NCBI RefSeq assembly: GCF_006345805.1
Contig: NW_021834183.1
Location: 1 to 49,767 of the forward strand
Length of the DNA: 49,767 nucleotides
Reading direction: 5' to 3'
Origin: Octopus sinensis
Lineage: Eukaryota
The position numbers and the translations under genes are program-made. Every line of letters begins with the position of its first letter. Within the stretch, counting starts at the first letter, position 1. Positions 5,950 to 33,770 of the stretch are shown piece by piece. Below the pieces are notes generated by a model, which did no database searches, had not been told where the DNA came from, and worked only from the letters and a program-made list of their open reading frames with translations.

Positions 5950-6069
5950 TCCGAGGTGGCGGCCTCTCTTGGTGAGAAAACAAAGAGTTGATGGTCGAAG
6001 CGTTTATATATAATAGTTCTAATAAATTTTTTGTCCTATTTAAATAATTAGATAAATATATATCACGTG

Positions 6070-11310: not shown

Positions 11311-12551
11311 TTAATTTTCAAACTGATTTTTGAGACGACGAACACAGAAATCTTTAGAAAAGTTTTCATGCAAATTTTTTGTTCTACGACTCGATTCCAA
11401 ATAGTTTGTCCAGCATGCATTAAGTATATCATCGACAGTAATATTATCCACGTTATGTCCAATCATTCTGATTATAAAGAATCCATCATTTTTTAGATAT
11501 TTCGAGACAAAGTCCGAGACATTGGTCTTCTCCTTGCCTGTTATTTTTACATATTTAGTGACATATGACAGTCTTGCAGGAAAATAGAGAAAATAGTAGA
11601 TCCAATTGAAAAAATAGTAGCACGAGTATATCCCAGCTAAACAATAGAAAAACCAAACAAGGAGGAATATTTTTTCCAAAAATAAATTTACTTGGAGCAC
11701 ACATTGCAGTGTGTATCTGTATTCCTGGTTTACTTCTCGTATTGTGAAGTCGCAATATGTCACTCGAGGAAAGTAAGATGACTCGTTAAGTTCTCTGCCA
11801 TGGAAATACTCGTTAATCAGAACGGGCCCGTATGTTTGAAATTGAAAACCCAAGAAAACGTTAAACAGAACAAGCTGGAGAAAAATATTTGCAAGAAACA
11901 GTAGTTTGGTGACGAAGTAGGCAATGGTTAAATAGTTCCCCTTTCGACGTCCTCCAATCATCATAACCGTTTTTATAAAATACAAAATGTAGGTGAGGAT
12001 AGAGACTGGAGGGTCACGATCGGTCACATAGTCGTTGATTTCACTGGAAACCGATTTGGCAAGACGTGTTTTGTCTGCAACTTTAACTGAATCTCTCGCC
12101 TTGATGCATGTTTCTATTATCTTTGAAAGATTTATTCCAGAATTAGAAGAATAGGTACGCCAAATAACAATTGGGACATAGAAAAGGAATGCCATGAACA
12201 TGAATATAAATTGAATCCATTGATAGTAAGGAAGAGTTGTTTTCTGCTGCTCGGCATTCGACTCAGGAAGTCTTTTTCCTAGTGGGGCGAAATAGGTGCC
12301 TTTCACCCAACAAATCGAGTGGGCGTAATCCGTGTAGGCGGCTAAAAATATATAAATAACTACAAACATGTGAATATAGGAGGACACCAGCATTGAATCG
12401 GAGTTCCAACATAGTTACGTGTCAAAATAATCAAGCCAAATGCAAATAATAATGTAGCACCATATCGGTAACTCAGTCTATCGGCTCGGTCGTCATCTTT
12501 TCTTGACTTTGAGTCGACAACAGCTCTCGAGAAAAAACGTACAAACTGCAT
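11311..12551 (-). CDS. inx: Innexin (gap junction protein), 2 exons, about 404 aa
   Basis: DDDRADRLSYRY, YVGTPIQCWCPP, CWVKGTY, YYQWI, FPRVTYCDF, CVLQVNLFLEKIF motifs; the 26-nt intron 12342-12367 joins ORFs 12360-12551 and 11311-12393. Confidence 0.95.
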
Positions 12552-13130
12552 TCTTAGAGATTAATGAAACTAAATATCCTATTTAATATCTATTTGAATC
12601 TTCAATATTAGCCGATTTTTGATAATCCGACCATTTTCCGAGTCCATTAATTATAATTACAACAATTTCTATATAATATTAAAGGTTTTCAGTAACATAT
12701 ATCTCTTTCATTTTAAAAATTTTCCTCATTTTTTATGAGAGTTTTTCCATAAAAAACAAGTTTAAGAAAAGTCTTTAATAACAAAAATACCAATACAATT
12801 AATTAAAACATAACTAACGACAGATCTCAAGCGTACGAAATTTTGCGAAACAATTGTCAGTTCACAGGTGACAAAGATCAAACGACAACGAAATCTTAAA
12901 ATAAGAGATCTTAAAACGAAATCTTAAAATATAATAAAAATGTAATTTAGAGTTAAGATGAACATATAGTGTCTTTGGTGTTACAATATGTTTTTTAATT
13001 AAACAAAAATAATTTTCGTTAAATTTAGATTAACGAATTTTTTTTTATAAAGTACTAAAAATCCTGAAAAAATCAATTTTTAAGGAAAATTTTATTAACG
13101 AAAACGATTTTTTGAATTCTCACTCATGAG

Positions 13131-14264
13131 TAGGGCGAACTAAGTTAAAAAAGTTAAAATTTAATAATAGTAAATAAATAATAATTTGAATGATTTTTTA
13201 ACTATATTTTATTATAAATAAATGCATATTGATGCCAAAACCCAAGTGTTCGTTGCTTAAGAAAGCCAAGCGTATAGTCTCAGAATTCAAAGATGAGTTC
13301 TGTATTGCTGACGATGGCCTTCTATTTTGTTCTCTTTGTTTATCCAAAGTCAATTGTGCAAAAAAATTTTCAGTCGATTTTCATCGTTCTTCTTTAAAAC
13401 ATCAGAACAATATGCGTATAAATGTAATACAATTGTAGGTCATTCATGTGATTCAGTTCAAACAACATTAACTGAATCAATCAAAGTAGATTCGGTTAAA
13501 GAAACGGTCACGGAAGCTTTTGTACAAGCAAACATCCCGCTATACAAATTAAAAAATGATTCGATCAAAAAAATGTTTAAAACATTTAACATTAACACTC
13601 CGTCCGAATTTTCATGCAGAACTACGGTTAAATTTCTTGCACAAAAAAAGATAAATGAGTTGACAAAATTATTAACGTATTAAAGTTTATTTTTTAACTT
13701 TTAGAAACGAAAAGATTTTTATAATGATTGATGAAACAGATATCCGAAGGAAAAGTTTTGTAGTGATTCTAATTGGAAGCATTCGCTTTCCAACAAAATC
13801 CTATTTGGTTGAATGCAAACCACTGGAAAATCATGCCAATGCTGCTATCATCTGCCAAATAATAGATGACGTCATTAGAGAAATGAAGATTATTTGTGAC
13901 AATTTTTATCTGTTAATCTCAGATGCCGCTCCTTATATGATTTCTGGTGATATAAAAGTATCTAAATAAATAGGCGGTAAAACTTTAATGGTCATGTATA
14001 ACAACATGCATCATGTGACTTGTGTTTCTCATTTGTTACACAATACGGTTTTACGTATAAAGTCTGCATATCCGGAAATAGATGGCTTAATTGCAAGCAT
14101 TAAAGCTGCCACAGTAAAAAACCGAAGACGTCGTAATTTGTTCAAGGATGTTGAATACCCACCTGATGTCGTAATTACTAGGTATTCTTTTTCTTAATTT
14201 ATGCAGATGGGGAAGTTGGTTTAAAGCAGCGAAATATTATTTCACGAATTTTGAAAAAATATAC
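13131..14264 (+). mobile_element. hAT-related (CGGBP-like) transposase with mini-introns, 3'-truncated
   Basis: TAGGG-type end at 13131; ATG 13232; N-terminal zinc finger LFCSLC...H...KH; IDET, SDAAPYM, HVTCVSHLLH, PPDVVITRWGSW motifs; introns 13416-13438, 13677-13704, 13947-13973, 14182-14206. Confidence 0.8.
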
Positions 14265-15438
14265 TGACTGACTGACTTTGCCTCCCCTCTCCCCGACAGG
14301 CTCTTCAGTTGTTTCCAGAAGTCCGGAAAGCGCGGGTCCACTCTTTGGCAGGCCCGCTCCCACCGTGAACTTTCGTGTTCACGGATTTCCCTCCGGATCT
14401 CCCTCTGAAGCCGGCTGATCCAGCCGCAAAACCAGACACGGTTCTCCTGGTAGACGCATTTGTCCCGCAGTCTGGACAGCCGGCGCTTGAATCTAATTTT
14501 ATTTAGCACCCTGTACGGGAGCGTGGAATGTGCCTGGCCCTGTACTGGGTTCTGTTTGAAATTATCTCGCATATAATCAGACAGGGCAGCATTGATTCCA
14601 TTATCTAACGCCTCCAACTCTCGTATGTTGGCGCAGGTATTCCCCACCAGGAGTGAGGGCAACCTGCTGGCCATGAACCTCTCCAGGTTGGCCCAGGAAC
14701 CGGACCGGAGGTCAAAGTATCCTGGGGCCCTTTGAGGAACTGGCTCACGGAGTTCGTGCAATAGAGGCAGATGGTCGCTCCCATATCAGGCAATAAGATT
14801 GTGTTACTAACCCAATTTAGCATCCCGGGGCTGACCAGAGCAAGGCCTAGCCAGTCTTGTCCTCCCCGCGAATCGATGTGGTTTGGCTCGCTTGAAGATC
14901 TGATTTCCAACCCGAGGTCTTCAACCAGCGTCTTTAGAGCCAAACCATGCGCGTTGGTTACCCTGAAACCGAGCTCTTGGTGCTTGGCATTCAGGTCCCC
15001 AACGACCATCGCCTTCGGATGCTTTCCAAAGAACTCCCGTACGTGCCAAGAACACGCCGTAAAGTTCTTCGAATACATCGCCCCTAGGTAAAATGTTAAA
15101 TTACCTATGCGAATCCTCACTTGGAGGAATTCACATAGGCTACAAGAACATAAACCTGAGCTCCGGAGAGCAAGGTACGGCTTGTAGAAGAGGCTAGTTC
15201 CAGTGCCACATGTTGACCCCTGTTTCCAGGGTATGTGACAGCAGTTGTAGCCATCAACTACGTACCGATCCTGCTTTAACTTTGTTTCGTTGACCACCAG
15301 GATGTCCGCACTAGTGGTGGCCAACATCCTCCGAATCGCGTCTCCTTTGCCTGACAAGGAGCGCGCGTTCACCGATATGATGTTGAGCTGGATGAGTGTG
15401 CCTGAGCCCAGTGGGAGCAGGTCATTGGTTGCGAACAT
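14265..15438 (-). mobile_element. LINE ORF2 N-terminal block: apurinic-like endonuclease plus linker, 3'-truncated
   Basis: SVNARSL, DILVVNETKL, VVGDLNAKH, and SDH (in frame in the B' copy); GC-rich relative to flanks; 1-nt frameshift near 14783. Confidence 0.88.
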
Positions 15439-15854
15439 CTCATGAGCTGATGCTCAGCGAATAGAAAAGCTAAATAGAACAAAAATTAAAAAGGGGAATT
15501 TTAGTTAACTTAAATTAACCCCAGAAGCGACAAAAATTATAAATTTTCTAAAATATTCGCATCATATTTAAATTTAAAAATAGATGTACATTTTCTCTTT
15601 AAAACGCGAGATTTTTACTGATTCTCTAACTAAACATAATTATAAACCGATTCAAAAAAGTAAACTATTAGAAAAAAATTAATTTTTCAAAAGATATAAC
15701 TCTACTTTACTCTATAAATATACTTTTTGTTTTTTCTAGAATATTTCTTACCGATTAAAAAAGCAATCGTAGTATTTCACCATCGTTTTTTAGTTAGTAT
15801 ATTTATGAAATTGCTAATTTTTTATCAATGTATTTTATTAAAAAAATTAATAAT

Positions 15855-16163
15855 TTATCCACCAAATCCATAAATTGTCCTACCTTGACGTTTCAAGGCA
15901 TTAACAACGTCCATTGCGATAACAGTTTTTCTTTTGGCATGTTCAGTGTAAGAAATACAATCACGAACAGTTTGCTCAATAAAAATTTTAAGGACAGAAC
16001 GTGTCTCCTCGTAAATTTTTCCAGAAATTCTTCGAACACCTCCTCTTCGACATAGTCTTCTTATTGCTGGCTTAGTAATTCCTTGTATATTGTCAATTAA
16101 TATCTTTCGAAATCGTTTTGCACCACTCTTTCCTCCTTTGCCACCTTTACCACGTCCAGACAT
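15855..16163 (-). CDS. H4: Histone H4, highly divergent
   Basis: 102-aa [13 protein letters not shown]...[14 protein letters not shown]...TIYGFGG. Confidence 0.97.
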
Positions 16164-16177
16164 TATTCTTAAGGAGG

Positions 16178-17235
16178 AAAAATTTATTAGTTAAGGGAGG
16201 CAGTTAAAAACTAACTAAGTAGACCTTCGGCATCGCTGCCTTTTCAGTCTCCATCACACACACGCCTCCCTACACACAACCACAAGTTAAGACTTACCGC
16301 CTTACCTGCCATCCAGAAATAATCTTCTCTAGGACCTCAGAGAGGCCTTTGAGGGATGATTCCTGGGCGTCGGAGAGCTCAGTCCGGAATCCTAAGCCAT
16401 AGGCTAGCCTTATGGCTCGTCTTCTTACTTTTTTAAGCACGTCAACATGCTTATCCCTGTCCTCATAGAGGTACCAAGCGTGGACGCCATAGGTCAAGAC
16501 GGGTAACACCATGGCGTTAAACACGCGGAACCAGGCACCTCTGCTCAAGCGGAAAGCACGCAACGCACCTAATCGCTGCATTGCACGCATTTTCGTACGT
16601 GCAATGTGATCATCAAACTTACCGGACGGCTTAAAGAGCACGCCCAAATAAGTCATCCGATCAACTGCAGCGATTGCTGACCCCTCAGCAATAACCTAGG
16701 AACAAAATTAGTGTAACCCCTCGTCCTTTTACAGGCTTTAAGGACACTGCACTTGTCCGCGCACATTCTCAGACCCCTACTCCCACACCAGTTTGCAAGT
16801 CCATCCACAGCAACCTGAAGCCTACGACACGCACACTCCGGTTTCATTGAGTGATCCCAGAGGATAATGTCGTCTGCATAGATTACCATTTCAGTACGAG
16901 CATTGACTGGCATAGGCGCAGTGGCCATAAACACATTGAATAGTGTCGGACTGAGCACAGAGCCCTGAGGGACCCCGCGAAGGACTGTTGCGACTTTAGA
17001 AAAGACCCCCTGATGCCGCACGACCTGTCTGCGAGATTCAAGAAACCCCGACAGCCAGCGCCTTAGACACGGAGAAACCCCGCACGTGGCAAGGGAACTC
17101 CGGAGGCCGTCGTGCCACACCGAGTCGAAGGCCTTTTCAATGTCGAGACTAACTAAAATACCGCATTCCCTTTTCTGGAGGGCGCTCTTCATACTAGACG
17201 ACACCTTGTGAAGGCAGTCCCCGCATGAGCGGCCC
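16178..17235 (-). mobile_element. Jockey/I-group LINE 3' block: RT core, C-terminus and 3' UTR
   Basis: GRSCGD...LDIEKAFDSVWHDGL, GVPQGSVLSPTLF, YADD, YLGV motifs; one 1-nt frameshift near 16683; ends AATAAATTTTT on the minus strand. Confidence 0.92.
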
Positions 17236-17936
17236 TTGTGAAGACAGTCAACTTTGAGACCGATACGTAGACAGATACCAACTCGCAGTGTGTCAGAATC
17301 CAAGAGAGTCCCCAAGCTTTCGATCGGGAAGGCTTCTAACCATTCTCCACTCCCCGTGGACCTCCCGGCAAGCAAGCATGCTCTACGGTGTTGATTCGAT
17401 GTCTTTAGGAGACTCTCGAACCAACCTTCGCACACAATCTTGTCATAACTCTTCTGCAAGGAGAAGTCCGACGGCAGCTTCGATTCGTTTGCGCTCCAAC
17501 TGTCAAAGTAGGCAGTCATCTTAGGTAATGAAGATTCGGGGAGGAGATGGAGAATCTTCCAAACCAGAGTTTGACTGCTGTACAGTGAAGGCAGGAATGC
17601 GGGGCGGGACACATCGATAGGAGTTCGGATGCCAAGACCTCCAAAGGAGACAGGAAGGGAAGCTTGTTTCCAGCCTTGATCGTCGAATTTGATGTTTATG
17701 ATGCGTTCGGTTGTTTTCCGGAAAAGGACATTAATAGAATGAAGTTGATCATTTTCTAAGAAGCAGGGTGACCCTCGTAGCACATGATTTAATTTTTGGA
17801 TGCCAAGGGCATTTTTGAGCAAGAAGAAGGCTGTATGTGGGTCCAACAAATTAAGACGAACAAAAATCTTTTCCAGTAGCATTTCCTTAGTTTCAAGAGC
17901 GTCCTTGATTCCACCATCTGTCAATGGGCAAGAGAG
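17236..17936 (-). mobile_element. CRE-clade-like non-LTR element, post-RT region, fused in frame to the Jockey-type RT
   Basis: QASLPVSFGGLGIR, AFLPSL, SGEWLEAFPIESLGTLL, LRVGICLRIGL motifs typical of CRE-like REL-endonuclease elements. Confidence 0.72.
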
Positions 17937-17940
17937 ATAG

Positions 17941-18110
17941 GTAATATATTATGCAATTTGGTAATTTACTAAAAGTGAGGTGGGTGTAGTTGAGATTATA
18001 TAATGAATTGTGTAATATATTATGCAATTTAGGGAGGTCCCGAATTGTTACGATATAGGAGTACTTAAAATTATGTAATAAATTGCGTAATATATTATGC
18101 AATTTTGGGA
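17941..18110 (+). repeat. Degenerate tandem repeat, about 71-75-bp period, 3 cores
   Basis: Core GTAATATATTATGCAATTT at 17941, 18012 and 18087. Confidence 0.8.
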
Positions 18111-18189
18111 AGTTCCTAAATGTTAAGATATGTGGGTAATTTTTTTTACAACTTTATGAATAGTGAATGGAAGTGAAAAGATAGCTAAG

Positions 18190-18340
18190 CTAATTACTGG
18201 CCTCACGAGACACCCGGCCAGCCTCTCGAATGGCGAAGCCGTTCCCTCGGATCACAGCAATCGACAGAATAAAAAGAGTTAACTCAGAAAGCTATTATTT
18301 CATCTGGCGGATTTATGATTCGAAAGACTACAGAAACTCC
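18190..18340 (-). mobile_element. CRE-like ORF C-terminal remnant
   Basis: Translation ILSIAVIRGNGFAIREAG...* resembles the terminal SIAxQRGNA motif of CRE-like elements. Confidence 0.5.
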
Positions 18341-18857
18341 TAAACCAACTTCTTAACTCTAAATTAATTATTTGAATAATGCACTGTTATTTTGTAATGT
18401 TGTTTTCGAAGTAAATTAGATCAACGGTTAAGTTAAGTTCCTTTAACCTATTTCGAAATAATTTCAAATACAATTTACACGTTTAAAAGTAATTTTAGAT
18501 AAAATATCACAATACTGTGTTATTTTATCATTGGCAAAATATTTTACCTGTCCAATATAATTTACTTATTATGCTAAATTATCCCAAAAAATAGTAAATA
18601 TATACAGTGAACAAAAATAAAAACTGAAAAAGCATTTTCTCACGAATTTACTATGAAAAAATATCTAAAAATAACTTCTATTGATTTAAAACATTAAATA
18701 AAGTATTTTTTAGTTTTTTAAAAAAATATTATATTTTGTGACATGGGTAATCAGGCCCCTATAGGCAACCTGTTCTTTACGTGTTACTGTGGCAACTACT
18801 TAACAAATTAATACTAAAAAATTTTTTAAAACAAGTCAAACACTAATAAATTAATAG

Positions 18858-19620
18858 TTAATCAGAAACTAAGCAGATCTCACTCCAGCTCGCTGATATC
18901 CACCAGCTGATATCTCCTTCTCTGGAAGAAGAGCCTACTTCCAGCTGCCTTTTACTCCTCATTACCACATCTGATTTAACCATTGCATCCTCTTTAGAAT
19001 TCATTGGGTCGTCTTCATTTTTGCATGCCATCTCCACATACCGGTTGCAAGCAGAAGCGTAATCTTCACCAGATACCTTCATTCCGCGCTTGTGTTCGAT
19101 CATCATACTCTCGAGCGTTCTTTTCAGTAAAACGGATTGGATGTATGTCCTCGTTCCTGCCTCAATAGATAGTTTTTTCATTTATTTAAAGACCAAACAC
19201 GGGTAAGCCAGTTAATTATTATAATCCCCCTGGTCCCCGATTCAAGCGAGGGAGATCCTACTGAAAGGTTCGATCCTGCCCACATGAACCGGCCTGAGAC
19301 GACGATGTCCCAGGGTCAGAGTTCTAGAAATCCTTTTTCGGTAGGCATTAAGTGCCTCCTGAGCGTTTCCATATCCGATTGGAAATTCCAACTGACATGG
19401 TGGACCCCATAACGCCACGCTAAGACCGGAAGGAAGGTAAGAGATCCCCATTTCCAACTGTGTCGTGCCAGAAGTACTCGTTGCCTCACGGGCAGGGGAA
19501 CGATAACGAGAATTGACCCCAGGATGAAACTAGCCTCCTTCGGAATCGAACTCACGACTGTCCAAATCCATTATCCATAGCTTAGTCTTCAGCCAAGATA
19601 GTTTCTTCATATAATTTTTG
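18858..19620 (-). pseudogene. Cargo ORF(s) of unknown function inside the Ginger-like element
   Basis: ORF 18858-19181 (MKKLSIEAGTRTYIQSVLLKRTLESMMIEHK...) plus disrupted upstream frames sharing EMGI and LT(W)D with ORF 40076-40315. Confidence 0.55.
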
Positions 19621-19719
19621 AAGCATTTTGAATTAATACTAATAACTTTAAAAACTAATTAATAGATATTTAATAGTTATTTTTTTAAACGCCACATCAA
19701 CACCGATTTTTTCTCACTA

Positions 19720-21030
19720 TTTGAAAATTCGACCTAACCATGAATTTCGACCTATACCTCTACGCGTGAATTGGACAAAATTGTGCGTATTTCACTAGTA
19801 TCGGAATACTTGGATTCGAATTTATCCAACATTAAAGCTGGATTCGTCCCGTAATCCTTTGCAATCCGAACCTTAATAAGATTCAAAAACAATTTACAAC
19901 TTTGTCCCCTATGGCATAATTGTATTTACTACAATGCACGCCCATTTTCCTATTTATCCTCTTGTAGTATTGATCATCTCCACCGATCGGATGTATTTAG
20001 AAATTAAAAGATGTTTCTGCTGACGATTCTTGAGGTTACTTAAAATATGCCACCTTCTACAGATTCGATGATCGGTAACAGATTTGTTCCTAGAATTTCT
20101 CGATAACGCTTGAATGAGGTCTCATTCGAAAATGAATGCATCGTTGTATTGTAGCAATACACCGAATATCTGAGAATGGAGACCCATTTATTTTCATTAG
20201 GATACTTCAACTTCGATAGTGATCTCGTAATTGTCTGATTAAAGCGTTCGACTATACCTTACAAAATAATGTATTCCATAAGGTAACCTGTGATCTAGGG
20301 TTATTAGGTCTGCCGTGTATATGTTGAAATTTGAACTTTTCGAAGAGAACCCGAATGTCAATATTTTTGAATTCTGTCCTATTGTCGGATTGTAGAATCT
20401 GACAGGGACCATTCAGATAAAATAGGGACTCGAGATTTTTTGAAACCTCGACTCATGAGTCATGACTTATTCATTAGTGGCCTAGCAAAAGCAAAACTAT
20501 GATAATTATAATCATAAAACCGACTATAGACGTCAATAACGGATAAAATCCATTTGTATTCTCCGTTAACGTTTTCAAACCTTTTCAGATCAATATGATC
20601 AATTTGAAACCGCTTATTAGGAGCAAAAGCAAAAACATGTTAGTTTCATCCACGGTCTAAATTATTACTAAAACAGACTTAACTTTAAGTGGAAGAGAAA
20701 GACATCGCAATCTAATATGACTTTTCTTATGACCTCACTTTTCACGATAAAGTAATGCCTGCGACAGAGAAATTCAATTTTGTTGAGGCCTCCGTGAGAC
20801 ATCAAGTGTAGAGAACGAGCATGGATCTCCATCTCTGCTAGACAGTCCAAAGGAATTGGTAATTTTTCAATTTCCCCTTTCAAATAAAGTCTTTAAATTA
20901 AAGTCTTTAATTAATACTTATCAATTTTTTAACAAAAATTTGAAGCTTTTTTGGCCAACCGGCGTTTGCTTCGGGCATTCATATCCTCCGGGAATATCCC
21001 GATTAACGCTTCCTTAATTTGATTGTATTC
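19720..21030 (-). pseudogene. Retroviral-type (rve) DDE integrase/transposase, degenerate, with mini-introns
   Basis: HHCC region HLMSHGG...VILDC; core RFQIDHID...WILSVIDVYSRF, QSDNRTEF, HGRPNNPRSQ/GIVERFNQT, YNTTMHS; C-terminal GDKVRIAKD restored by a 29-nt GT-AG intron. Confidence 0.82.
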
Positions 21031-21119
21031 GTTAATATGGGTAAGCCATTTTTAAAAGATAATTCAAATGCAATTTTAATTAGAATAATTGATTAATCTA
21101 CACTCTTCCATATATAAGT

Positions 21120-21420
21120 GGTATTTCTTATTGCTTGAGCTGTTACTGATTTCCCTTCTTTTTCTGTAAATGTTTTGGTAAATTTAAAACAGTTAAAATT
21201 GACATCCAATTTTCAAGCATCTTTAATTTAAAATATTTCTTGACGATTGAGCAACGATGGTCGACCAGACCCGACTTTTTTGTCCGTCGAGCACTTATTT
21301 AAATAGCTTCTGATAATTTGCGATATCGTGCCGAGCAATCATTAAGTGATATCTTGTATATCTCTGTATTTTTTTCCAGATTTATACATGGCAATTATGC
21401 TGCCCTTTTCTTTAGATGTT
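21120..21420 (-). mobile_element. Tc1-like transposase N-terminal (HTH) fragment
   Basis: KGSIIAMYKSGKKYRDI...KKVGSGRPSLL with stops; GRP motif. Confidence 0.6.
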
Positions 21421-21551
21421 CAATGATTGCCTATGTAGAGAGATTAGAAATGATTGAATTTGAACGAATTAATAAAAATAAACCTTTTCTTTGATATATT
21501 TAAGTAATTTGAATTTGTTCAGCATTTTTGTGGTTTTAAATTTCCGATATA

Positions 21552-22997
21552 CAGTAGACTATTCATTTAACGAAAATGAAAATTGAGCATTCGTTAAATG
21601 AATTTAACGAAAAAATTGTTTAATTAAAAATGTGTCATGTAATCGGTAATTTTAGGTTCTTTCTTTTTAATTTTTGCCAATTATTTCTCAATTTGTAATT
21701 AGGTGAATATGTTCACCAGATTCTTGCAAAAAATATTTTTCAATATTTTCCAAATATTTAAGTGCATCTGCATAACCAATGGGATTGTCACTTTTATTAT
21801 CTCTAATTGTAAGGTGATTTAAATTTAATACCTTTTCGTCAGTGGATTCTTCAAGTATTTTTTCATCTATCTTCGCCCAATTATTTAATGCCTTGTTAAA
21901 GCAATTTTTGATAGTGTCCACTGTGACTTCGTTCCAAGCCTCAATAATTAAAGGTAGAGCATTCACTAATTTGAATTTGGTAAGTTCATCTGTATATGAC
22001 AATGTTCCTATATTTGTTCCCATACTCAAATTTCTAGTCATTCCTTTTTTATACAACGATTTAAATGAATGCACAATCCCTTGATCAATTGGTTGAATCT
22101 TAGATGTTGTCTTTGGAGGAAGAAAATACAATTCGATATTACTGAATTCGCCATCAAAATAGTGAACTGGCGCATTATATAAAAGAAGCAAAATCTTTCT
22201 ATTTTCCACACTCATTTTGGAATTTAACCGTTCAACCCAGTTTTTAAAAATTAAACTGGTCATCCAAGATTTATTGCTATTTGCATATTGAATCCCAAGA
22301 TTATTCATATTAATATTTTTAAAACCATGAGGATTTTTGAATTTTCCGATTACCAACGGATGCTCTTTATCTCCTTCCATACTCTTCCTTAAAGCGTGAA
22401 ATCCATGGGTGAGATGCTTTGAAATTTTCAATATAAAATCGTTGAGCAATTTTGAGTGCCATTTCGCGTACCATTTCATTAGTTATGGTGTGATTACAGA
22501 AACGTTTGTTCTGAATCCATGCATATAGTGGTTCATATATCTTATCAGTACAACTTTTAAATGTAATATTCTTTTTTTGTTTGTGACGCCTTGATCCATA
22601 CAATTGCATTTTCTTCAACGTTGAATTGATCACACCAATAGGCATATTAACCGCTGAGCCAAATTTTCTTGAGTAACAGCAGGATTATTCTTCTTGAAAT
22701 CAATAACTTCCAGTTTTTGTTGAATTTGATAAGTTTTTTTTTTTTTCTTCATATTGTTCACCCTTGTACACATGGTTTACTACAAAGAAATAGCGAGGAA
22801 AAATTATTTTAAAATTTTATCAAAAATTTTAATTTTCGTTATTTAAATATTCGTTAAATATATTTAAATATTCACTAATACAAAGAAAAAAAATTTTTAT
22901 TTTTGAATTTATCTAAGGAAAAACGTAAAAAATATTTTGACTTTCGTAAAATGAATATTTTCGTTAAATTTTTTTTCGTTAAATGGATAGTCTACTG
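21552..22997 (-). mobile_element. pogo/Tigger-like DNA transposon, internally deleted (1446 bp)
   Basis: 25-bp TIRs CAGTAGACTAT(T/C)CATTTAACGAAAA with one mismatch; TA TSDs; CENP-B-type HTH (FKASHPWISRFK) and DDE_1 region (LLLLYNAPVH, PPKTTSKIQPIDQGI). Confidence 0.92.
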
Positions 22998-23347
22998 TAT
23001 TTATTAAAAAAACTAAAAAATGTAAATTACTTTAATCTATGTTAAGAATAAATTTGAGACATATTTGCAATATTGTCCCATAGTAAATTTATAAGAAAAA
23101 ACATGTTCAGTTTTATTTTTGTTTACTGTAGCTTGTTCATGGTTATAGGTTTTCGTTTGTTTTCCTCATTTATATTAATTATCAAACAAATCCGTATTAA
23201 ACGATTTGAATTATATTTTTTTACGATACACAACTAGTATCCTCTATTTATCTAAACGAGGTGCATTTTCTACAAACTTCAACAAAAAATTTAAAAATTG
23301 TCTCAGAATTATACAAACAATAAATCATTTTTTTATAAAAAAACAAG

Positions 23348-23758
23348 TTATGTTTTTTCACCTCGAATTCTTCTCGATAAATGCATATCGTTTGGCATTA
23401 TAGTTACTCTTTTTCCGTGAATTGCGCACAAATTACTGTCTTCAAAAATTCCAACAAGGTAACTCTCTGCCGCTTCTTGGAGAGCGACAATCGCTGACGA
23501 TTGAAAACGCAAATCAGTTTTGATAAACTGAGCGGTTTCTCTCACGAGTCTCTGGAATGGAAGTTTTCGTAGTAACAAATCAGTGCTCTTTTGATATCGT
23601 CTAATTTCTCGCATTGCAACAACTCCAGGTCGAAATCGATGAGGTTTCTTTACCCCTCCAAATTGTGAAACAGACTTGCGAGCAGATTTTGCAGACAACT
23701 GTTTCCTTGGTACTTTTGCACCAGTAGATTTTCGAGCTGTTTGTTTTGTTCTAGCCAT
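23348..23758 (-). CDS. H3: Histone H3, highly divergent
   Basis: 136-aa [16 protein letters not shown]...[10 protein letters not shown]...RRIRGEKT. Confidence 0.97.
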
Positions 23759-23783
23759 ATTTTATTATTTCAGACAAGGGGGG

Positions 23784-24790
23784 AAAAATTTATTAGTTAA
23801 GGGAGGCAGTTAAAAACTAACTAAGTAGACCTTCGGCATCGCTGCCTTTTCAGTCTCCATCACACACACGCCTCCCTACACACAACCACAAGTTAAGACT
23901 TACCGCCTTACCTGCCATCCAGAAATAATCTTCTCTAGGACCTCAGAGAGGCCTTTGAGGGATGATTCCTGGGCGTCGGAGAGCTCAGTCCGGAATCCTA
24001 AGCCATAGGCTAGCCTTATGGCTCGTCTTCTTACTTTTTTAAGCACGTCAACATGCTTATCCCTGTCCTCATAGAGGTACCAAGCGTGGACGCCATAGGT
24101 CAAGACGGGTAACACCATGGCGTTAAACACGCGGAACCAGGCACCTCTGCTCAAGCGGAAAGCACGCAACGCACCTAATCGCTGCATTGCACGCATTTTC
24201 GTACGTGCAATGTGATCATCAAACTTACCGGACGGCTTAAAGAGCACGCCCAAATAAGTCATCCGATCAACTGCAGCGATTGCTGACCCGCTCAGCAATA
24301 ACCTAGGAACAAAATTAGTGTAACCCCTCGTCCTTTTACAGGCTTTAAGGACACTGCACTTGTCCGCGCACATTCTCAGACCCCTACTCCCACACCAGTT
24401 TGCAAGTCCATCCACAGCAACCTGAAGCCTACGACACGCACACTCCGGTTTCATTGAGTGATCCCAGAGGATAATGTCGTCTGCATAGATTACCATTTCA
24501 GTACGAGCATTGACTGGCATAGGCGCAGTGGCCATAAACACATTGAATAGTGTCGGACTGAGCACAGAGCCCTGAGGGACCCCGCGAAGGACTGTTGCGA
24601 CTTTAGAAAAGACCCCCTGATGCCGCACGACTGTCTGCGAGATTCAAGAAACCCCGACAGCCAGCGCCTTAGACACGGAGAAACCCCACACGTGGCAAGG
24701 GAACTCCGGAGGCCGTCGTGCCACACCGAGTCGAAGGCCTTTTCAATGTCGAGACTAACTAAAATACCGCATTCCCTTTTCTGGAGGGCG
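23784..24790 (-). mobile_element. Jockey/I-group LINE 3' block (5'-truncated at about 24790)
   Basis: Nearly identical to 16178-17190; ORF 23900-24628 has PQG and YADD; same AATAAATTTTT 3' end. Confidence 0.93.
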
Positions 24791-24878
24791 GACAATGCCA
24801 GTATAGTAAAAAAGACTCATTCCGAATTTTTTTCAAAAAGTATTATTCCGAAAATTTTTGGTTAATTACTCATTGGAA

Positions 24879-27103
24879 TTTTTTTATTAATAATTAATTA
24901 GAGAGGCTGTTAGTGAGGTAACATAAGGAGACCTTCGGCATTCCTGCCTTTTCGGTCCAGCACACACGCTCGCCTCTCTACACAACCACAGGTTAGGACT
25001 TACCGTCTTACCTGCCACCCAGTCATTATCTTCTCTAGGACCTCAGGGAGGCCTTTGAGGGACAATTCCTGGGCGTTGGAGAGCTCATCACGCCATCCTA
25101 AGCCGTAGGCTAGCCGGATGGCTCGTCTTCTTACTTTCTTAAGCGCGTCAACGTGCTTTTTCCCTGTCCTCGCAGAAGTGCCAAGCGTGCACGCCATAGG
25201 TTAACACGGGTAACACCATGGCGTTGAACACACGGAACCAGGCACCTCTCCTCAAGTGGAAAGCACGCAACGCGCCTAATCGCTGCATCGTTCTTCGCCA
25301 AGGATCTTCTTGGCCTCGGCAACGTTGCAGTGTAGCATTTCATCTACACTGCAATTCATCTCCTACAAAATTTTAATAGGGAAACGCATAATTGCACCGC
25401 AGGACTAATACTGTCCTGCGGTACACGCTCGCCAGGGGCTGAGTGCAATGGCATCTCCACGTATGGAGGACGCCTTTTCAGCCCCACGTTGTGCCGGACG
25501 GTGCCGCCGTTAGCCGCCTCGGAAGGCATTGCCGGCTTAGGCAACCAAGCGGACTCGGAAGCTTTCGCCTGCTTTGCCAACTTTGTCGGCGAAGGCTGCA
25601 CCGACCCACACGCAGCATGGCTCACAGGTTCCACTGGCTTCGCCACCCTAGCGGATTTGGAAGGTTTGGCCAGTATCGCCTGCTTGTCAGGTTTTGGGGC
25701 AGGGGGCGCGACGCGAGGCGGGCGCCTTACCTTTGGGATTACATCCCCACCTACCTTTCGGGTTGCCTCCTTAAACTTGGGGCAACCTCTGAAGTTGGCA
25801 GTGTGTCCTAACTTACCGCAATTGACACACTGCCTCTCCTTGGATGGTGAGGGGCACGTCTTGCGACCATGCTCTCCACCGCAGATAAGGCACTTAGCCT
25901 TATCCGGGCACTTCGTAGAGATGTGCCCGAACCCCTGACACCGAAAGCATTGGGTTGCTTTCGGGCGGGGCCAGGCAGCTCGGATCCTAATGTAGCCGAT
26001 CCTGGTACCAAGAAGTACCAGGCGCTCGGCTTCTGCAGGAGACCCAGTGTTAGCTCCGCCACTTCAAGAGGGCGATTACCCTGCTTGAAGCGTGCAATGG
26101 CAGAGGCACTGGGGTACTCCTGCTGCAGGTGATCTAGGAGGTCATTATCCTCGAAGTCCCGAGGAACCCGAGGAGGAGGACACTTACCTTTCTTACCTTA
26201 CGTTCGATCCTGACTAGGCGATGCATGCCAGGACCGAACGGATTTGACTTCTCCAACTCCCCTTGAAGTGGAGAAGTCATCCTCCTTCTCCCAACCAAGC
26301 AGGAATTGGGTGGGCTCCCTCTTCAGGACTCTATACAGCTTTGAAGGCTGGATAGAGTCCAAGGTACCTAGGATCTTTACGACCGAGGCCTTCCACTTGT
26401 AGGGAGGACCTCAAGTCGTGCCACAGCACCAAAGGTAATTCTACCCCCGGCGCCAGTGGTCTTCTTTGGGTGTGCATCCACCTGAGCGGACGCACACCCA
26501 GTACCTAAAACATTAGGGGTTGGACGGCCAGCAACACGTTTCGGCTTCCCCACCGTGTGCCAATCGTCCTCGGGGGGAACCTTATTTCCTGCCGGACCCA
26601 CCGGAGCGGGCCCAGGAGACGACACCCTGTTAGCATTAAATGACTTAAGTTGGCTGGGTTTGGCACCACTAGACAAACCGCAAACACGTGGCGAACCAGC
26701 ATGCTGTGCGGTTGTCGTGGCTACCAAACAATTAGTACCTGTTGCAGCTGCTGCTCCCCCGACACCAGCCAAAGGGGAGCAGAGGGAGAAGAGTCTCCAG
26801 TGAGTGCTGAACCCATCTGGGAGGGTCCAGGCTTCGACCTCCTGCTTTGACCTAAAGAATTAAAAACACCACTAGAATAGCCGGAAGCACGTGGCGGTGA
26901 ACCACGGCTCCGGCAGTTCATCGTAGTGGCACACTGAACCGTCTTGTCCTCCGGGGAGTGCGAAGCGGGAACGCCTCCACTTCGACATAGCCTTCTTAGT
27001 GCAGACAGTTGTCTCTTTGTAGCGACGGAAACATTTTTTGTTTTAATGGGAGCTCTTTTTTGTCCTTTTGTGCTAACTTTAGGTGCTATAATTAACAAAA
27101 TTT
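24879..27103 (-). mobile_element. Internally deleted LINE of a related subfamily: ORF1 (three CCHC knuckles) joined to the last about 400 nt and a short poly(A)
   Basis: CFRCQGFGHISTKC, CLICGGEHGRKTC, CVNCGKLGHTANFRGC at about 25780-25950; junction gaagaa|cgatgcagcg near 25290 into a diverged RT C-terminus; ends AAT(A)7. Confidence 0.85.
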
Positions 27104-27143
27104 TGTTAGCAAACATTATATTAGATTAGATTTAAACAATTAA

Positions 27144-28384
27144 TTAATTTTCAAACTGATTTTTGAGACGACGAACACAGAAATCTTTAGAAAAGTTTTC
27201 ATGCAAATTTTTTGTTCTACGACTCGATTCCAAATAGTTTGTCCAGCATGCATTAAGTATATCATCGACAGTAATATTATCCACGTTATGTCCAATCATT
27301 CTGATTATAAAGAATCCATCATTTTTTAGATATTTCGAGACAAAGTCCGAGACATTGGTCTTCTCCTTGCCTGTTATTTTTACATATTTAGTGACATATG
27401 ACAGTCTTGCAGGAAAATAGAGAAAATAGTAGATCCAATTGAAAAAATAGTAGCACGAGTATATCCCAGCTAAACAATAGAAAAACCAAACAAGGAGGAA
27501 TATTTTTTCCAAAAATAAATTTACTTGGAGCACACATTGCAGTGTGTATCTGTATTCCTGGTTTACTTCTCGTATTGTGAAGTCGCAATATGTCACTCGA
27601 GGAAAGTAAGATGACTCGTTAAGTTCTCTGCCATGGAAATACTCGTTAATCAGAACGGGCCCGTATGTTTGAAATTGAAAACCCAAGAAAACGTTAAACA
27701 GAACAAGCTGGAGAAAAATATTTGCAAGAAACAGTAGTTTGGTGACGAAGTAGGCAATGGTTAAATAGTTCCCCTTTCGACGTCCTCCAATCATCATAAC
27801 CGTTTTTATAAAATACAAAATGTAGGTGAGGATAGAGACTGGAGGGTCACGATCGGTCACATAGTCGTTGATTTCACTGGAAACCGATTTGGCAAGACGT
27901 GTTTTGTCTGCAACTTTAACTGAATCTCTCGCCTTGATGCATGTTTCTATTATCTTTGAAAGATTTATTCCAGAATTAGAAGAATAGGTACGCCAAATAA
28001 CAATTGGGACATAGAAAAGGAATGCCATGAACATGAATATAAATTGAATCCATTGATAGTAAGGAAGAGTTGTTTTCTGCTGCTCGGCATTCGACTCAGG
28101 AAGTCTTTTTCCTAGTGGGGCGAAATAGGTGCCTTTCACCCAACAAATCGAGTGGGCGTAATCCGTGTAGGCGGCTAAAAATATATAAATAACTACAAAC
28201 ATGTGAATATAGGAGGACACCAGCATTGAATCGGAGTTCCAACATAGTTACGTGTCAAAATAATCAAGCCAAATGCAAATAATAATGTAGCACCATATCG
28301 GTAACTCAGTCTATCGGCTCGGTCGTCATCTTTTCTTGACTTTGAGTCGACAACAGCTCTCGAGAAAAAACGTACAAACTGCAT
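27144..28384 (-). CDS. inx: Innexin, duplicate copy
   Basis: Same translation as 11311-12551; intron 28175-28200. Confidence 0.93.
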
Positions 28385-28963
28385 TCTTAGAGATTAATGA
28401 AACTAAATATCCTATTTAATATCTATTTGAATCTTCAATATTAGCCGATTTTTGATAATCCGACCATTTTCCGAGTCCATTAATTATAATTACAACAATT
28501 TCTATATAATATTAAAGGTTTTCAGTAACATATATCTCTTTCATTTTAAAAATTTTCCTCATTTTTTATGAGAGTTTTTCCATAAAAAACAAGTTTAAGA
28601 AAAGTCTTTAATAACAAAAATACCAATACAATTAATTAAAACATAACTAACGACAGATCTCAAGCGTACGAAATTTTGCGAAACAATTGTCAGTTCACAG
28701 GTGACAAAGATCAAACGACAACGAAATCTTAAAATAAGAGATCTTAAAACGAAATCTTAAAATATAATAAAAATGTAATTTAGAGTTAAGATGAACATAT
28801 AGTGTCTTTGGTGTTACAATATGTTTTTTAATTAAACAAAAATAATTTTCGTTAAATTTAGATTAACGAATTTTTTTTTATAAAGTACTAAAAATCCTGA
28901 AAAAATCAATTTTTAAGGAAAATTTTATTAACGAAAACGATTTTTTGAATTCTCACTCATGAG

Positions 28964-31271: not shown

Positions 31272-31689
31272 CTCATGAGCTGATGCTCAGCGAATAGAAA
31301 AGCTAAATAGAACAAAAATTAAAAAGGGGAATTTTAGTTAACTTAAATTAACCCCAGAAGCGACAAAAATTATAAATTTTCTAAAATATTCGCATCATAT
31401 TTAAATTTAAAAATAGATGTACATTTTCTCTTTAAAACGCGAGATTTTTACTGATTCTCTAACTAAACATAATTATAAACCGATTCAAAAAAGTAAACTA
31501 TTAGAAAAAAATTAATTTTTCAAAAGATATAACTCTACTTTACTCTATAAATATACTTTTTGTTTTTTCTAGAATATTTCTTACCGATTAAAAAAGCAAT
31601 CGTAGTATTTCACCATCGTTTGTTAGTTAGTATATTTATGAAATTGCTAATTTTTTATCAATGTATTTTATTAAAAAAATATTTATAAT

Positions 31690-31998
31690 TTATCCACCAA
31701 ATCCATAAATTGTCCTACCTTGACGTTTCAAGGCATTAACAACGTCCATTGCGATAACAGTTTTTCTTTTGGCATGTTCAGTGTAAGAAATACAATCACG
31801 AACAGTTTGCTCAATAAAAATTTTAAGGACAGAACGTGTCTCCTCGTAAATTTTTCCAGAAATTCTTCGAACACCTCCTCTTCGACATAGTCTTCTTATT
31901 GCTGGCTTAGTAATTCCTTGTATATTGTCAATTAATATCTTTCGAAATCGTTTTGCACCACTCTTTCCTCCTTTGCCACCTTTACCACGTCCAGACAT
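31690..31998 (-). CDS. H4: Histone H4, duplicate copy
   Basis: Same protein as 15855-16163. Confidence 0.96.
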
Positions 31999-32012
31999 TA
32001 TTCTTAAGGAGG

Positions 32013-33770
32013 AAAAATTTATTAGTTAAGGGAGGCAGTTAAAAACTAACTAAGTGACCTTCGGCATCGCTGCCTTTTCAGTCTCCATCACACACACGCC
32101 TCCCTACACACAACCACAAGTTAAGACTTACCGCCTTACCTGCCATCCAGAAATAATCTTCTCTAGGACCTCAGAGAGGCCTTTGAGGGATGATTCCTGG
32201 GCGTCGGAGAGCTCAGTCCGGAATCCTAAGCCATAGGCTAGCCTTATGGCTCGTCTTCTTACTTTTTTAAGCACGTCAACATGCTTATCCCTGTCCTCAT
32301 AGAGGTACCAAGCGTGGACGCCATAGGTCAAGACGGGTAACACCATGGCGTTAAACACGCGGAACCAGGCACCTCTGCTCAAGCGGAAAGCACGCAACGC
32401 ACCTAATCGCTGCATTGCACGCATTTTCGTACGTGCAATGTGATCATCAAACTTACCGGACGGCTTAAGAGCACGCCCAAATAAGTCATCCGATCAACTG
32501 CAGCGATTGCTGACCCGCTCAGCAATAACCTAGGAACAAAATTAGTGTAACCCCTCGTCCTTTTACAGGCTTTAAGGACACTGCACTTGTCCGCGCACAT
32601 TCTCAGACCCCTACTCCCACACCAGTTTGCAAGTCCATCCACAGCAACCTGAAGCCTACGACACGCACACTCCGGTTTCATTGAGTGATCCCAGAGGATA
32701 ATGTCGTCTGCATAGATTACCATTTCAGTACGAGCATTGACTGGCATAGGCGCAGTGGCCATAACACATTGAATAGTGTCGGACTGAACACAGAGCCCTG
32801 AGGGACCCCGCGAAGGACTGTTGCGACTTTAGAAAAGACCCCCTGATGCCGCACGACCTGTCTGCGAGATTCAAGAAACCCCGACAGCCAGCGCCTTAGA
32901 CACGGAGAAACCCCGCACGTGGCAAGGGAACTCCGGAGGCCGTCGTGCCACACCCGTCGAAGGCCTTTTCAATGTCGAGACTAACTAAAATACCGCATTC
33001 CCTTTTCTGGAGGGCGCTCTTCATACTAGACGACACCTTGTGAAGGCAGTCCCCGCATGAGCGGCCCTTGTGAAGACAGTCAACTTTGAGACCGATACGT
33101 AGACAGATACCAACTCGCAGTGTGTCAGAATCCAAGAGAGTCCCCAAGCTTTCGATCGGGAAGGCTTCTAACCATTCTCCACTCCCCGTGGACCTCCCGG
33201 CAAGCAAGCATGCTCTACGGTGTTGATTCGATGTCTTTAGGAGACTCTCGAACCAACCTTCGCACACAATCTTGTCATAACTCTTCTGCAAGGAGAAGTC
33301 CGACGGCAGCTTCGATTCGTTTGCGCTCCAACTGTCAAGTAGGCAGTCATCTTAGGTAATGAAGATTCGGGGAGGAGATGGAGAATCTTCCAAACCAGAG
33401 TTTGACTGCTGTACAGTGAAGGCAGGAATGCGGGGCGGACACATCGATAGGAGTTCGGATGCCAGACCTCCAAAGGAGACAGGAAGGAAGCTTGTTTCCA
33501 GCCTTGATCGTCGAATTTGATGTTTATGATGCGTTCGGTTGTTTTCCGGAAAAGGACATTAATAGAATGAAGTTGATCATTTTCTAAGAAGCAGGGTGAC
33601 CCTCGTAGCACATGATTTAATTTTTGGATGCCAAGGGCATTTTTGAGCAAGAAGAAGGCTGTATGTGGGTCCAACAAATTAAGACGAACAAAAATCTTTT
33701 CCAGTAGCATTTCCTTAGTTTCAAGAGCGTCCTTGATTCCACCATCTGTCAATGGGCAAGAGAGATAAGG
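32013..33770 (-). mobile_element. Duplicate LINE RT block plus CRE-like block, multiple frameshifts
   Basis: Copy of 16178-17936. Confidence 0.88.

Follow-up and report, generated by a model that had tools for sequence, protein, structure and literature searches.

Histone units and LINE fragments in the window

The window, that is, the whole stretch of 49,767 nucleotides that was analysed (contig VCDQ01013488.1 of the Octopus sinensis assembly), contains an H4 and an H3 gene, both of which are directly preceded on the minus strand by the 3' end of the same LINE (Table 1). The genes of the window are dicyemid-like, and the contig looks like DNA of a dicyemid parasite within the octopus assembly. 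Since public databases annotate such dicyemid-looking contigs as Octopus sinensis genes, this is also a practical caution. At the H4 gene, the LINE ends with ...CCCTTAACTAATAAATTTTTCCTCC at 16173 and is followed by TTAAGAATA (16172-16164) and the ATG at 16163. At the H3 gene, the LINE end at 23778 reads ...AAATTTTTCCCCCC; TTGTCTGAAATAATAAAAT (23777-23759) comes next, and the ATG lies at 23758. The original prediction placed the same LINE 14 and 25 nt upstream of the two ATGs, which was confirmed when the distances were counted from the T-run. Its description of the 3' ends as near-identical was also accurate; the pieces at 16173-17184 and 23779-24790 were 99.6% identical over 1013 bp, and the H4-linked copy recurred at 32007-33068 within a 9.7-kb segmental duplication. 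The 5' ends of the two copies differed, as had been described, with the H4 copy beginning at 17236 (position 3372 of the 4435-nt reference LINE1, on which all of the LINE coordinates are given) and the H3 copy being truncated at 24790 (position 3424).

Table 1. Features of the H4 and H3 units and their surroundings in the window
Feature	Position	Strand	Remarks
LINE1-like endonuclease-region fragment	14271..15388	-	89% identical to reference 1712-2826; about 470 bp downstream of H4
H4 gene	15855..16163	-	intact, 102 aa
H4 leader	16164..16172	-	9 nt, between LINE tail and ATG
LINE1 3' fragment	16173..17236	-	reference 3372-4435: RT C-terminal part, 3' UTR, tail TTTTTCCTCC; adjoins H4 leader
LINE-X C-terminal fragment	17237..17924	-	different, dispersed LINE family
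H2A remnant	18262..18353	+	divergently oriented, codons about 89-119
Tc5/pogo-like DNA transposon	21550..22998	-	HTH_Tnp_Tc5 and DDE_1 ORFs; inserted in H3-H2A spacer
H3 gene	23348..23758	-	intact, 136 aa
H3 leader	23759..23777	-	19 nt, begins at inferred transcription start
LINE1 3' fragment	23778..24790	-	between -24 and -19 of H3; reference 3424-4428 and tail TTTTTCCCCCC
H3 promoter, type A	24791..24879	-	two TTCGGAAT boxes; severed from gene by LINE1
Internally deleted LINE	24880..27011	-	reference 1-1706 joined to 3' end 87% like LINE1; tail AATAAAAAAA
H2B-type leader and H2B codons 1-27	27009..27112	-	5' end of internally deleted LINE copy, in frame with ORF1
Duplicate of H4 and LINE1 junction	31690..33068	-	within 27104-36799, copy of 11271-20980

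The protein encoded by the window H4 gene was identical to the H4 of LINE-free units, and more than 330 bp of its 3' flank was homologous to the cluster units. On the other side, the LINE1 fragment was joined in frame to the LINE-X fragment at a GACTGYCTTCACAAGG microhomology, and LINE sequence replaced H2A codons 1-89 together with the H2A-H4 promoter (about 405 bp). At the H3 gene, the promoter was intact to -24 and the leader resumed at -19, with 4 bp lost; the severed promoter matched the empty sites in loci L017, L018 and L021. The internally deleted LINE further upstream stopped about 130 nt from H3, and the unit retained the gene order of the cluster, H2B-H3-H2A/H4. For both copies, the LINE 3' UTR now occupies the former position of the promoter, as originally stated.

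The elements and the distribution of their tails

The elements are non-LTR (LINE) retrotransposons of the APE type; they have a reverse transcriptase and an endonuclease, show 5' truncation and lack LTRs. The RVT_1 domain was matched at E 5.5e-26 in the window and 3.8e-32 in LINE3, with the R2 and LINE-1 ORF2 proteins as the best solved-structure matches, and Exo_endo_phos and Exo_endo_phos_2 matched the N terminus of ORF2 in the window fragment, LINE1 and LINE3. ORF1 carries CCHC knuckles, and the tails are not poly(A). No targeting protein or domain was identified in the elements. The lineages were LINE1, LINE2 (an 87% variant of LINE1), LINE3 and LINE3b, and both LINE1 and LINE3 showed the start-site behaviour described below even though their ORF2 identity was only 32%. 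Copies started at reference positions 3372, 3424, 3510, 3342, 3651, 4322, 4009, 815 or 1 and had a common 3' tail.

The 5' end of the full-length copies lay at the same nucleotide. It consisted of a leader from H3 or H2B with the ATG, and the 27-28 histone codons that followed were in frame with ORF1; the LINE 5' ends carried 80-100 nt of H3 or H2B sequence. Full-length LINE1 copies began at the nucleotide that the LINE3 tail abuts (TGAAACTGTCC...), and other full-length copies began at -17 to -21 of an H3 leader. Both H3(1-28)::LINE1 at L020:19323 and H2B(1-27)::LINE1 at L021:981 had native promoters. Older layers of H3 and H4 codons were stacked behind the newer histone-derived 5' ends. The distance at which the LINE 5' end was joined upstream varied between 0-4 bp and about 1.2 kb, and the promoter or part of the neighbouring gene was often lost as a result.

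In the window and 11 related loci (255 kb in total, a small sample that was mostly fetched via histone genes), there were 21 distinct LINE 3' tails from the four related lineages, 13 of which were followed, 5-35 nt further on and on the same strand, by a histone-type ATG, while two more preceded a bare H2B leader. By chance, 0.35-0.44% of the oriented positions qualify (P about 1e-26, stated also as P<1e-25); hence, within this histone-biased sample, histone adjacency exceeded chance, as the original prediction implied. After the duplicates were removed, at least 14 different junction sequences remained, with differing 5' truncation points and from four lineages. Cases at H2A and H2B were found as well, and thus all four core histone genes are affected. 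Among the exceptions were three tails at -57 to about -130, a tail about 950 nt from the closest histone ATG and, in L012, a full-length LINE1 whose 3' flank was not histone. LINE1 and LINE3 were absent from the control, two loci of 41.6 kb in total that were fetched via innexin genes.

Junction geometry and its probable explanation

Empty sites were found for H3, H4, H2A and H2B, and homology to the unoccupied gene began at a single position in each of H4, H2A, H2B, H3-A and H3-B. The junction lay 9-30 nt from the ATG, yet it was constantly 41-45 nt downstream of the proximal promoter box TTCGGAATG in six promoter types. The bases around the junctions of these five targets had no consensus; the distance to the promoter element was thus fixed independently of the local sequence. 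Judging from the LINE 5' ends and the promoter spacing, the histone transcription start probably coincides with the junction. Two filled/empty pairs were plain in-situ insertions, namely the window H3 and locus L020, in which a 3970-nt LINE3 with an intact 945-aa ORF2 lies in an H3-B' allele with a 0-2 bp duplication and a promoter that is intact up to the junction. An intact promoter directly upstream was found in only two of about 15 start-site insertions; the rest had deletions or nested elements.

We consider it probable (roughly 0.6) that a small clade of APE-type LINEs inhabits the dicyemid tandem core-histone cluster, inserts by position-specific target priming at histone transcription start sites and is expressed from histone promoters. 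Target-primed reverse transcription would start where the template strand is nicked, no more than about 2 nt from the transcription start, and the LINE tail would therefore lie directly against +1 of H4, H3, H2A or H2B in the orientation of the gene. Promoter geometry, rather than the surrounding sequence, would determine the site; the element might contact, for instance, the histone promoter complex or a structural feature of the start site. Such insertions would account for the window promoters being severed (H3) or deleted (H4). The copies with a native promoter and an in-frame 5' junction in the first 27-28 codons of H3 or H2B may be the source copies; these would use the histone start site for transcription and the histone ATG for translation, and their progeny would consequently begin with a histone leader and N-terminal codons. 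Of the two explanations offered in the original prediction, the targeting of histone leaders or promoters therefore stands insofar as the insertions are in situ, recurrent and present at all four core histone genes. It does not stand as a sequence preference; the aim appears to be positional, at the transcription start 41-45 nt past the promoter box. The CC(Y)CC run that was read as a pyrimidine motif of the flank belongs to the LINE 3' tail and is present in every copy, including the one in L012 without a histone flank.

A more far-reaching version, which we put forward tentatively, is a closed cycle in which the elements are obligate residents of the cluster. They would integrate at +1 via the promoter complex, and their only expression would be from histone promoters, as histone::ORF1 fusions in frame; expression would thereby be tied to the S phase, and the ORF1 protein would bear the true N-terminal tail of H3 or H2B. 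The histone-derived 5' module would help to put new copies back under a histone promoter. The LINE tails have TAATAAAT or AATAAA 17-28 nt before the junction, while the native TATA-like distance is 18-23 nt; a tail might thus supply a TATA-like element at the native distance, and the downstream gene may remain usable.

The junction could instead be defined by the mRNA in cis, which we consider rather unlikely. A nick within the histone gene would be extended on the gene's own, abundant mRNA to its capped 5' end, followed by a jump to the 3' end of the LINE RNA; if the top strand were cut at the resulting branch point, the LINE would seem to be inserted exactly at +1. This would explain, without any targeting factor, the sense-strand junctions at +1 of four genes with unrelated leaders in four lineages, and the head-to-tail LINE1-LINE1 and LINE1-LINE3 junctions in L015 resemble such end-to-end jumps. 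In addition, GG, GGA or AGGA was found between the tail and +1 in seven of the 13 distinct LINE1 junctions and was missing from the two without an adjoining histone leader (L012 and H3 -57). Such extra nucleotides might not belong to the tail but stem from a template jump, as a trace of the cap or of non-templated addition. However, GGA has the same form at different targets and hence may simply be tail. Nicks inside genes should also produce intragenic tails by direct priming, but none of the 21 tails fell in a histone coding region, where at least five LINE 5' junctions do lie, and the +1..X segment of the same histone was present in no left flank. The LINE2 tail at H4 is shortened and has ATTT in common with the target, which fits annealing to the target better than an end-to-end jump. 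Together with the variable number of TTCG repeats among the LINE3b tails, this is as expected for priming on a repeat tail.

Capture without the endonuclease is less probable still. Histone genes are strongly transcribed in the S phase, and R-loops or transcription-replication collisions would cause breaks or nicks at their start sites, where LINE cDNA would be primed or captured; a fragile locus, and not the element, would account for the specificity. The lack of a junction consensus, the large and frequent upstream deletions, the rearranged mosaics that are common at the 5' junctions and the participation of several lineages would all agree with it. The uniform strand polarity, the junctions that lie within about 2 nt and the intact APE domains of the elements do not, and the dispersed LINE-X of the same genome was not found tail-to-start in these loci.

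For some junctions, duplication or recombination at the DNA level, without a new insertion, may account for the spread. As a general explanation, a few founding junctions would have been multiplied by unequal crossing-over in the array and by recombination of the histone-derived 5' modules of the LINEs with histone genes, which we regard as quite improbable. Identical junctions do occur where segments are duplicated or inverted (window 16173 and 32007; L015 7546 and 19823), two L020 units have a common 5' flank, and the histone sequence at the LINE 5' ends could recombine with the genes. Nevertheless, the at least 14 different junctions are not duplicates, their truncation points and lineages differ, and no LINE 5' end with an H4 or H2A leader is known. 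Recombination also cannot yield the left junction of the window H3, promoter against truncated LINE, or the LINE3 insertion in L020.

The second explanation in the original prediction, dispersed retro-chimeras in which the reverse transcriptase completes a histone mRNA, jumps to LINE RNA and inserts the product elsewhere, agrees with junctions at the inferred mRNA 5' ends but is very improbable because the H3 promoter, with only 4 bp missing, adjoins the 5' end of the truncated LINE and the DNA downstream of H3 and H4 remains cluster-like for more than 330 bp, beyond the AATAAA signals, with the cluster gene order retained. The flanks and the promoter likewise contradict, for the window H3 and H4, a LINE-mRNA chimeric retrocopy, whose cellular part would end at the mRNA 3' end in unrelated DNA.

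Relation to known systems and significance

R1 and R2 are autonomous LINEs of the tandem rDNA array, which occupy part of the units, are frequently 5' truncated and depend on host transcription; the R1 endonuclease is of the APE type. The histone-start LINEs resemble them as elements of a tandem host gene array with only some units occupied, in their common 5' truncation and in their proposed dependence on host transcription, and R1 also in its endonuclease. However, R1 and R2 use one conserved 28S sequence, whereas here at least five unrelated sequences in four protein-coding genes are used, all at corresponding points of the promoter. These host genes are transcribed by Pol II, and their ATG and N-terminal codons are taken over by the element. 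A single conserved target sequence, which characterises the sequence-specific LINEs of multicopy genes (R1, R2, Tx1-type, SLACS/CRE/NeSL), was thus not found. SLACS, CRE1, CZAR and NeSL-1 insert a few nucleotides past the start site of the tandem, Pol II-transcribed spliced-leader genes; because of this site, they are transcribed from the host promoter and have the first host nucleotides at their 5' end. They are the closest functional analogue, but they have a restriction-like endonuclease, which is limited to the R2, CRE and NeSL groups, and a single sequence-specific site, in contrast to the APE-type Exo_endo_phos domain and the histone genes here.

In the head-to-tail arrays of the LINEs HeT-A and TART, each unit has the 3' end of the preceding element where its promoter should be. 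The LINE 3' end at the promoter position, with its TATA-like motif near the native distance and a putative promoter role, is similar, but the targets here are genes and not chromosome ends. U6-L1 and other template-switch chimeras also join a LINE to the end of a cellular RNA. In these chimeras, the cellular RNA is 5' of the L1 part, and the units are dispersed and have target-site duplications, whereas the histone genes here lie 3' of the LINE and remain in their own genomic flanks, and a promoter survives upstream. Ty3 and the Dictyostelium TRE5-A and TRE3 integrate at a fixed distance from the promoter or start, which probably involves contact with the transcription complex (see PMC5006619, PMC6101501 and PMC5911963). 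The fixed distance whatever the local sequence is shared with the histone-start LINEs; however, Ty3 belongs to the LTR elements and all of them use Pol III genes, while the targets here are core histone genes, where contact with a transcription complex is proposed.

In literature searches and full-text checks, no report of core histone genes as a LINE target was found; to our knowledge, the targets of such LINEs are simple repeats, rDNA and the genes of snRNA, spliced leaders or tRNA. If confirmed, position-specific insertion at histone start sites would mean that the safe havens of LINEs include a family of protein-coding Pol II genes. It would also provide a LINE counterpart of the start-site integration of Ty3 and describe an element without a promoter or start codon of its own, both of which are borrowed in frame from a host gene. 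Should the closed cycle prove true, this would be the first LINE lineage that is specialised on protein-coding Pol II genes. In this compact system, it would be possible to test how an APE-type LINE can aim by position and not by sequence, how its 5' end is renewed and whether the occupied histone units are still expressed.

Origin of the contig and the histone loci sampled

The window is the complete contig VCDQ01013488.1 of GCA_006345805.1, and its proteins are named in the databases as those of Octopus sinensis. The GC content outside the LINEs was 30-35%, and long uninterrupted ORFs were found for an innexin, a PDZ protein and an enoyl-reductase-like protein. Both the H3 and the H4 of the window are divergent; in the H4 homologue search, no close relative was found and the only matches were ordinary H4 proteins, to which it was approximately 79% identical. 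The best named relative of the innexin was Dicyema koshidai innexin1 (53%), and the only mollusc innexins among the matches were those from the same assembly. Dicyemids live as parasites in the cephalopod renal organ. In D. japonicum, the genome has 36.7% GC and 49% repeats and is rich in LINEs (PMC6736024). Because of its GC content, uninterrupted ORFs, divergent H4 and innexin affinity, considered together with the biology of dicyemids and the genome features of D. japonicum, the contig was treated as dicyemid DNA within the Octopus sinensis assembly, with moderate-to-high confidence. Two direct duplications, 1-11159 vs 38572-49767 (99.3%) and 11271-20980 vs 27104-36799 (99.5%), give the contig the order A-B-C-B'-D-A', and could represent real segmental duplication or two haplotypes that were assembled together. 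The B' boundary (27104) and a LINE 5' end are no more than approximately 10 nt apart.

Exact-protein look-ups with the window H3 and H4, one LINE protein and two innexins yielded 11 non-redundant related loci (denoted by L-numbers), which with the window made up 255 kb, a small sample that was selected through histone genes and in which individual junctions are affected by nested rearrangements and possible assembly errors. The ordinary unit consists of H2B(+), ~530 bp, H3(+), ~1.95 kb, H2A(-), 155 bp, H4(+) and ~1.05 kb before the next H2B; its gene order is preserved on the minus strand of the window, but with many insertions. An Rfam scan of the window and L022 gave no match at the family gathering score, and the histone 3' stem-loop was likewise undetected. 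AATAAA signals are present near the stop codons of H3 and H4 in the window and L022, and the mRNAs of these genes may be polyadenylated.

Four related LINE lineages of the APE type, LINE1, LINE2, LINE3 and LINE3b, occupy the histone cluster. LINE1 encodes CCHC knuckles in ORF1 and an APE endonuclease and a reverse transcriptase in ORF2; the latter ORF is intact (896 aa) in one L020 copy. The LINE3 and LINE1 ORF2 are only 32% identical, LINE3b is ~54% identical to LINE3, and the LINE2 3' end is 87% like that of LINE1. The tails, i.e., the LINE 3' termini, are TTTTTCCCCCC or TTTTTCCTCC in LINE1, AAAAAAATTTCCATTTCC in LINE2, (TTCCA)n in LINE3 and (TTCG)n in LINE3b. A homologue search with the LINE reverse transcriptase matched only two proteins, both from the same assembly.

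Junctions between LINE tails and histone leaders

The original prediction that the same LINE ends just upstream of the ATGs of H4 and H3 was borne out. On the minus strand, the LINE (...CCCTTAACTAATAAATTTTT and a C-rich run) stops at 16173, 9 nt before the H4 ATG, and the same end stops at 23778, 19 nt before the H3 ATG; the two pieces, which had been described as near-identical, share 99.6% identity over 1013 bp. A second copy of the H4 arrangement does exist, at 31690-33068, because segment 11271-20980 recurs at 27104-36799. The CCYCC..TT motif that had been put forward as a target sequence was ruled out, since every such run is the LINE's own tail. An in-frame joint between LINE1 and LINE-X, an unrelated dispersed family with relatives in L013 and L016, was found at a repeated GACTGYCTTCACAAGG (window 17185-17260) and resembles the product of a template switch from one LINE RNA to another. 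A public 175-aa 'histone H4-like' protein model, named as Octopus sinensis, is the LINE1 C-terminus joined to H4.

Across the 255 kb, 13 of the 21 distinct tails have a same-strand histone-type ATG 5-35 nt downstream, and two more are followed by an H2B leader whose coding region was lost; qualifying oriented positions make up 0.35-0.44% of this histone-selected sample (P<1e-25). The targets were H4 (window, L015, L016, L022), H3 (window, L020, L022), H2A (L016) and H2B or its variant (L020 twice, L016, L017, L021); in L015, H3-type and H2B-type leaders at the 5' ends of other LINE copies were targets as well. Once the duplicated segments were removed, at least 14 different junction sequences remained, differing in LINE lineage and truncation point, and they represent repeated events. 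The exceptional tails have a non-histone flank (L012), lie at -57 and ~-130 of histone genes, or are ~950 nt away. Survival of only those insertions that fell at start sites was rejected as an explanation, because an insertion in the spacer, which amounts to 3.7 kb per unit, should do no more harm. In L016:12471-12514 (L005:7471-7514), two outward-facing LINE1 3' ends replace the H2A-H4 promoter, a 30-nt tail piece adjoining H2A and a 1.09-kb piece adjoining H4, with an identical 34-nt end, AGGA included, common to both. In L022, a DNA transposon of ~3.7 kb (~8866-12600; L001:5450-9185; TIRs GTCACCGGTTG...), located 140 bp downstream of H4, severs a LINE2 copy and leaves just the last ~20 nt of its tail against the next H4 leader.

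Comparison with empty sites, i.e., the same genes without the LINE, revealed one junction position per gene.

Histone genes, LINE copies and junction sequences (a slash marks the junction, placed by comparison with unoccupied genes)
Feature	Location	Strand	Junction sequence	Remark
H4 gene	15855-16163	-		intact
H3 gene	23348-23758	-		intact
LINE1 reference	L012:6307-10741			4435 nt
LINE3	L020:6003-9972			intact 945-aa ORF2
H4 junction			GTGTTC/ATTTAGAG	
H2A junction			TAGTTAG/CAGAGTATA	
H2B junction			CACTCC/AAAACTTG	
H3-A junction			CATTG/TTGTCTG	
H3-B junction			AACTAG/GTCTG	

There is no consensus among these five junction sequences, and the distance from junction to ATG varies from 9 to 30 nt, while that from the proximal promoter box TTCGGAATG to the junction stays within 41-45 nt in each of the six promoter types. 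Moreover, the 5' ends of full-length LINE1 copies coincide with the same points: two L020 copies begin at TGAAACTGTCC, the exact nucleotide where the LINE3 tail adjoins the H3-B' allele, and in others the first nucleotide lies between -17 and -21 in an H3 leader. The junction thus behaves like a transcription start and is taken as the putative +1. Copies of a TTCGGAATGATAC-like box occur in every core histone promoter (e.g., window 24791-24879, L022:8263-8417), and the proximal one, 41-45 nt ahead of the putative start, is probably bound by a histone-specific factor. H3-B' (L020:19227-19322) carries 14 nt (CCTGAAACTGTCCT) that H3-B (L022:5463-5543) lacks; they sit precisely at the insertion hotspot and may have been left there by a previous insertion that was aborted or deleted.

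Insertion into resident genes

The sequence directly 5' of the truncated LINE at the window H3 (24791-24879) corresponds to the H3 promoter as far as -24; beyond the LINE, the leader continues from -19, so that only ATTG is missing compared with the empty sites in L017, L018 and L021. In L020, a complete LINE3 lies within an H3-B' allele with a 0-2 bp duplication, and a LINE3-free H3-B' allele is found 9 kb away. The 3' flanks of the window H3 and H4 match ordinary units for more than 330 bp. Genomic flanks on both sides and at least 14 different junctions contradict the earlier proposal of LINE-histone retro-chimeras and also rule out simple 3' transduction; these flanks indicate that the window H3 and H4 and the L020 cases are insertions into resident genes and not dispersed LINE-mRNA chimeras. 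The left junction at the window H4 falls within codon 89 of the adjacent H2A gene, and ~405 bp including the shared promoter were replaced by the LINE1 piece and other sequence, partly a fragment of an unrelated LINE; upstream deletions at other start-site insertions range from 120 bp to ~1.2 kb. A long target duplication from +1 to codon 28 was looked for and was not found; L021 has H2B(1-27)::LINE1 at the left and merely a variant H2B leader at the right.

The best reading is target-primed insertion, which would be primed at a nick made in the template strand where histone transcription starts; the nick may be aimed by the promoter complex or by a structure at this site, both of which are guesses. 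Target-primed insertion is favoured because the filled and empty pairs are clean, because the LINE2 tail is shortened, with ATTT microhomology, and because no tails lie inside histone coding regions compared with at least five LINE 5' junctions that do. Its main rival, in which extension first uses the mRNA of the same histone gene and then jumps to LINE RNA, accounts for the precision and polarity of the junctions and for the GG or GGA that is additionally present at seven LINE1 junctions, but predicts tails inside genes, where none was seen. The GG might be a product of cap copying, but GGA may instead be part of the tail, since it is found unchanged at different targets, one of them L015:8557, where just 10 nt of H2B leader remain. 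Two weaker alternatives to target-primed insertion are capture at lesions and spread through recombination.

Histone sequence at the LINE 5' ends

In full-length LINE1 copies (L012, L015, L017, L020), ORF1 is preceded in frame by the ATG and H3 codons 1-28, with an H3 leader at the very 5' end; in a second form (window 27112-27009; L021), an H2B leader and H2B codons 1-27 take their place, likewise in frame. Next in the LINE1 stack are a piece of only 12 nt that looks H3-derived (QLSA) and H4 nucleotides 96-130 (30/34 identical; shuffled maximum score 12), while the LINE3 5' end comprises an H2B-variant N-terminus, H3 nucleotides 40-70 (27/30 identical) and the same H4 piece. The ORF1 N-termini at window 27112-26940, L012:6227-6400 and L015:18680-18300 (minus) are in-frame histone stacks in the order H3 1-28 or H2B 1-27, the short H3-like piece and H4 codons 33-44. 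The derived change CRSGG (instead of CRRGG) is common to LINE1 and LINE3 although their ORF2 identity is so low, which suggests that 5' modules were exchanged between the lineages. Two copies, L020:19323 (H3) and L021:981 (H2B), kept native promoters and look like source copies, whose transcription and translation would both rely on histone signals.

Of the known systems, R1/R2 and the spliced-leader LINEs (SLACS, CRE and NeSL) come closest, as do Ty3 and TRE5-A with respect to positional aiming. Unlike the site-specific LINEs, those at histone starts have no single target sequence, and, unlike the position-specific elements, they are not aimed at Pol III genes. No report of a LINE that targets histone genes was found in the literature searched. 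These elements are best called LINEs that are aimed at histone start sites and that borrow histone leaders and N-terminal codons.
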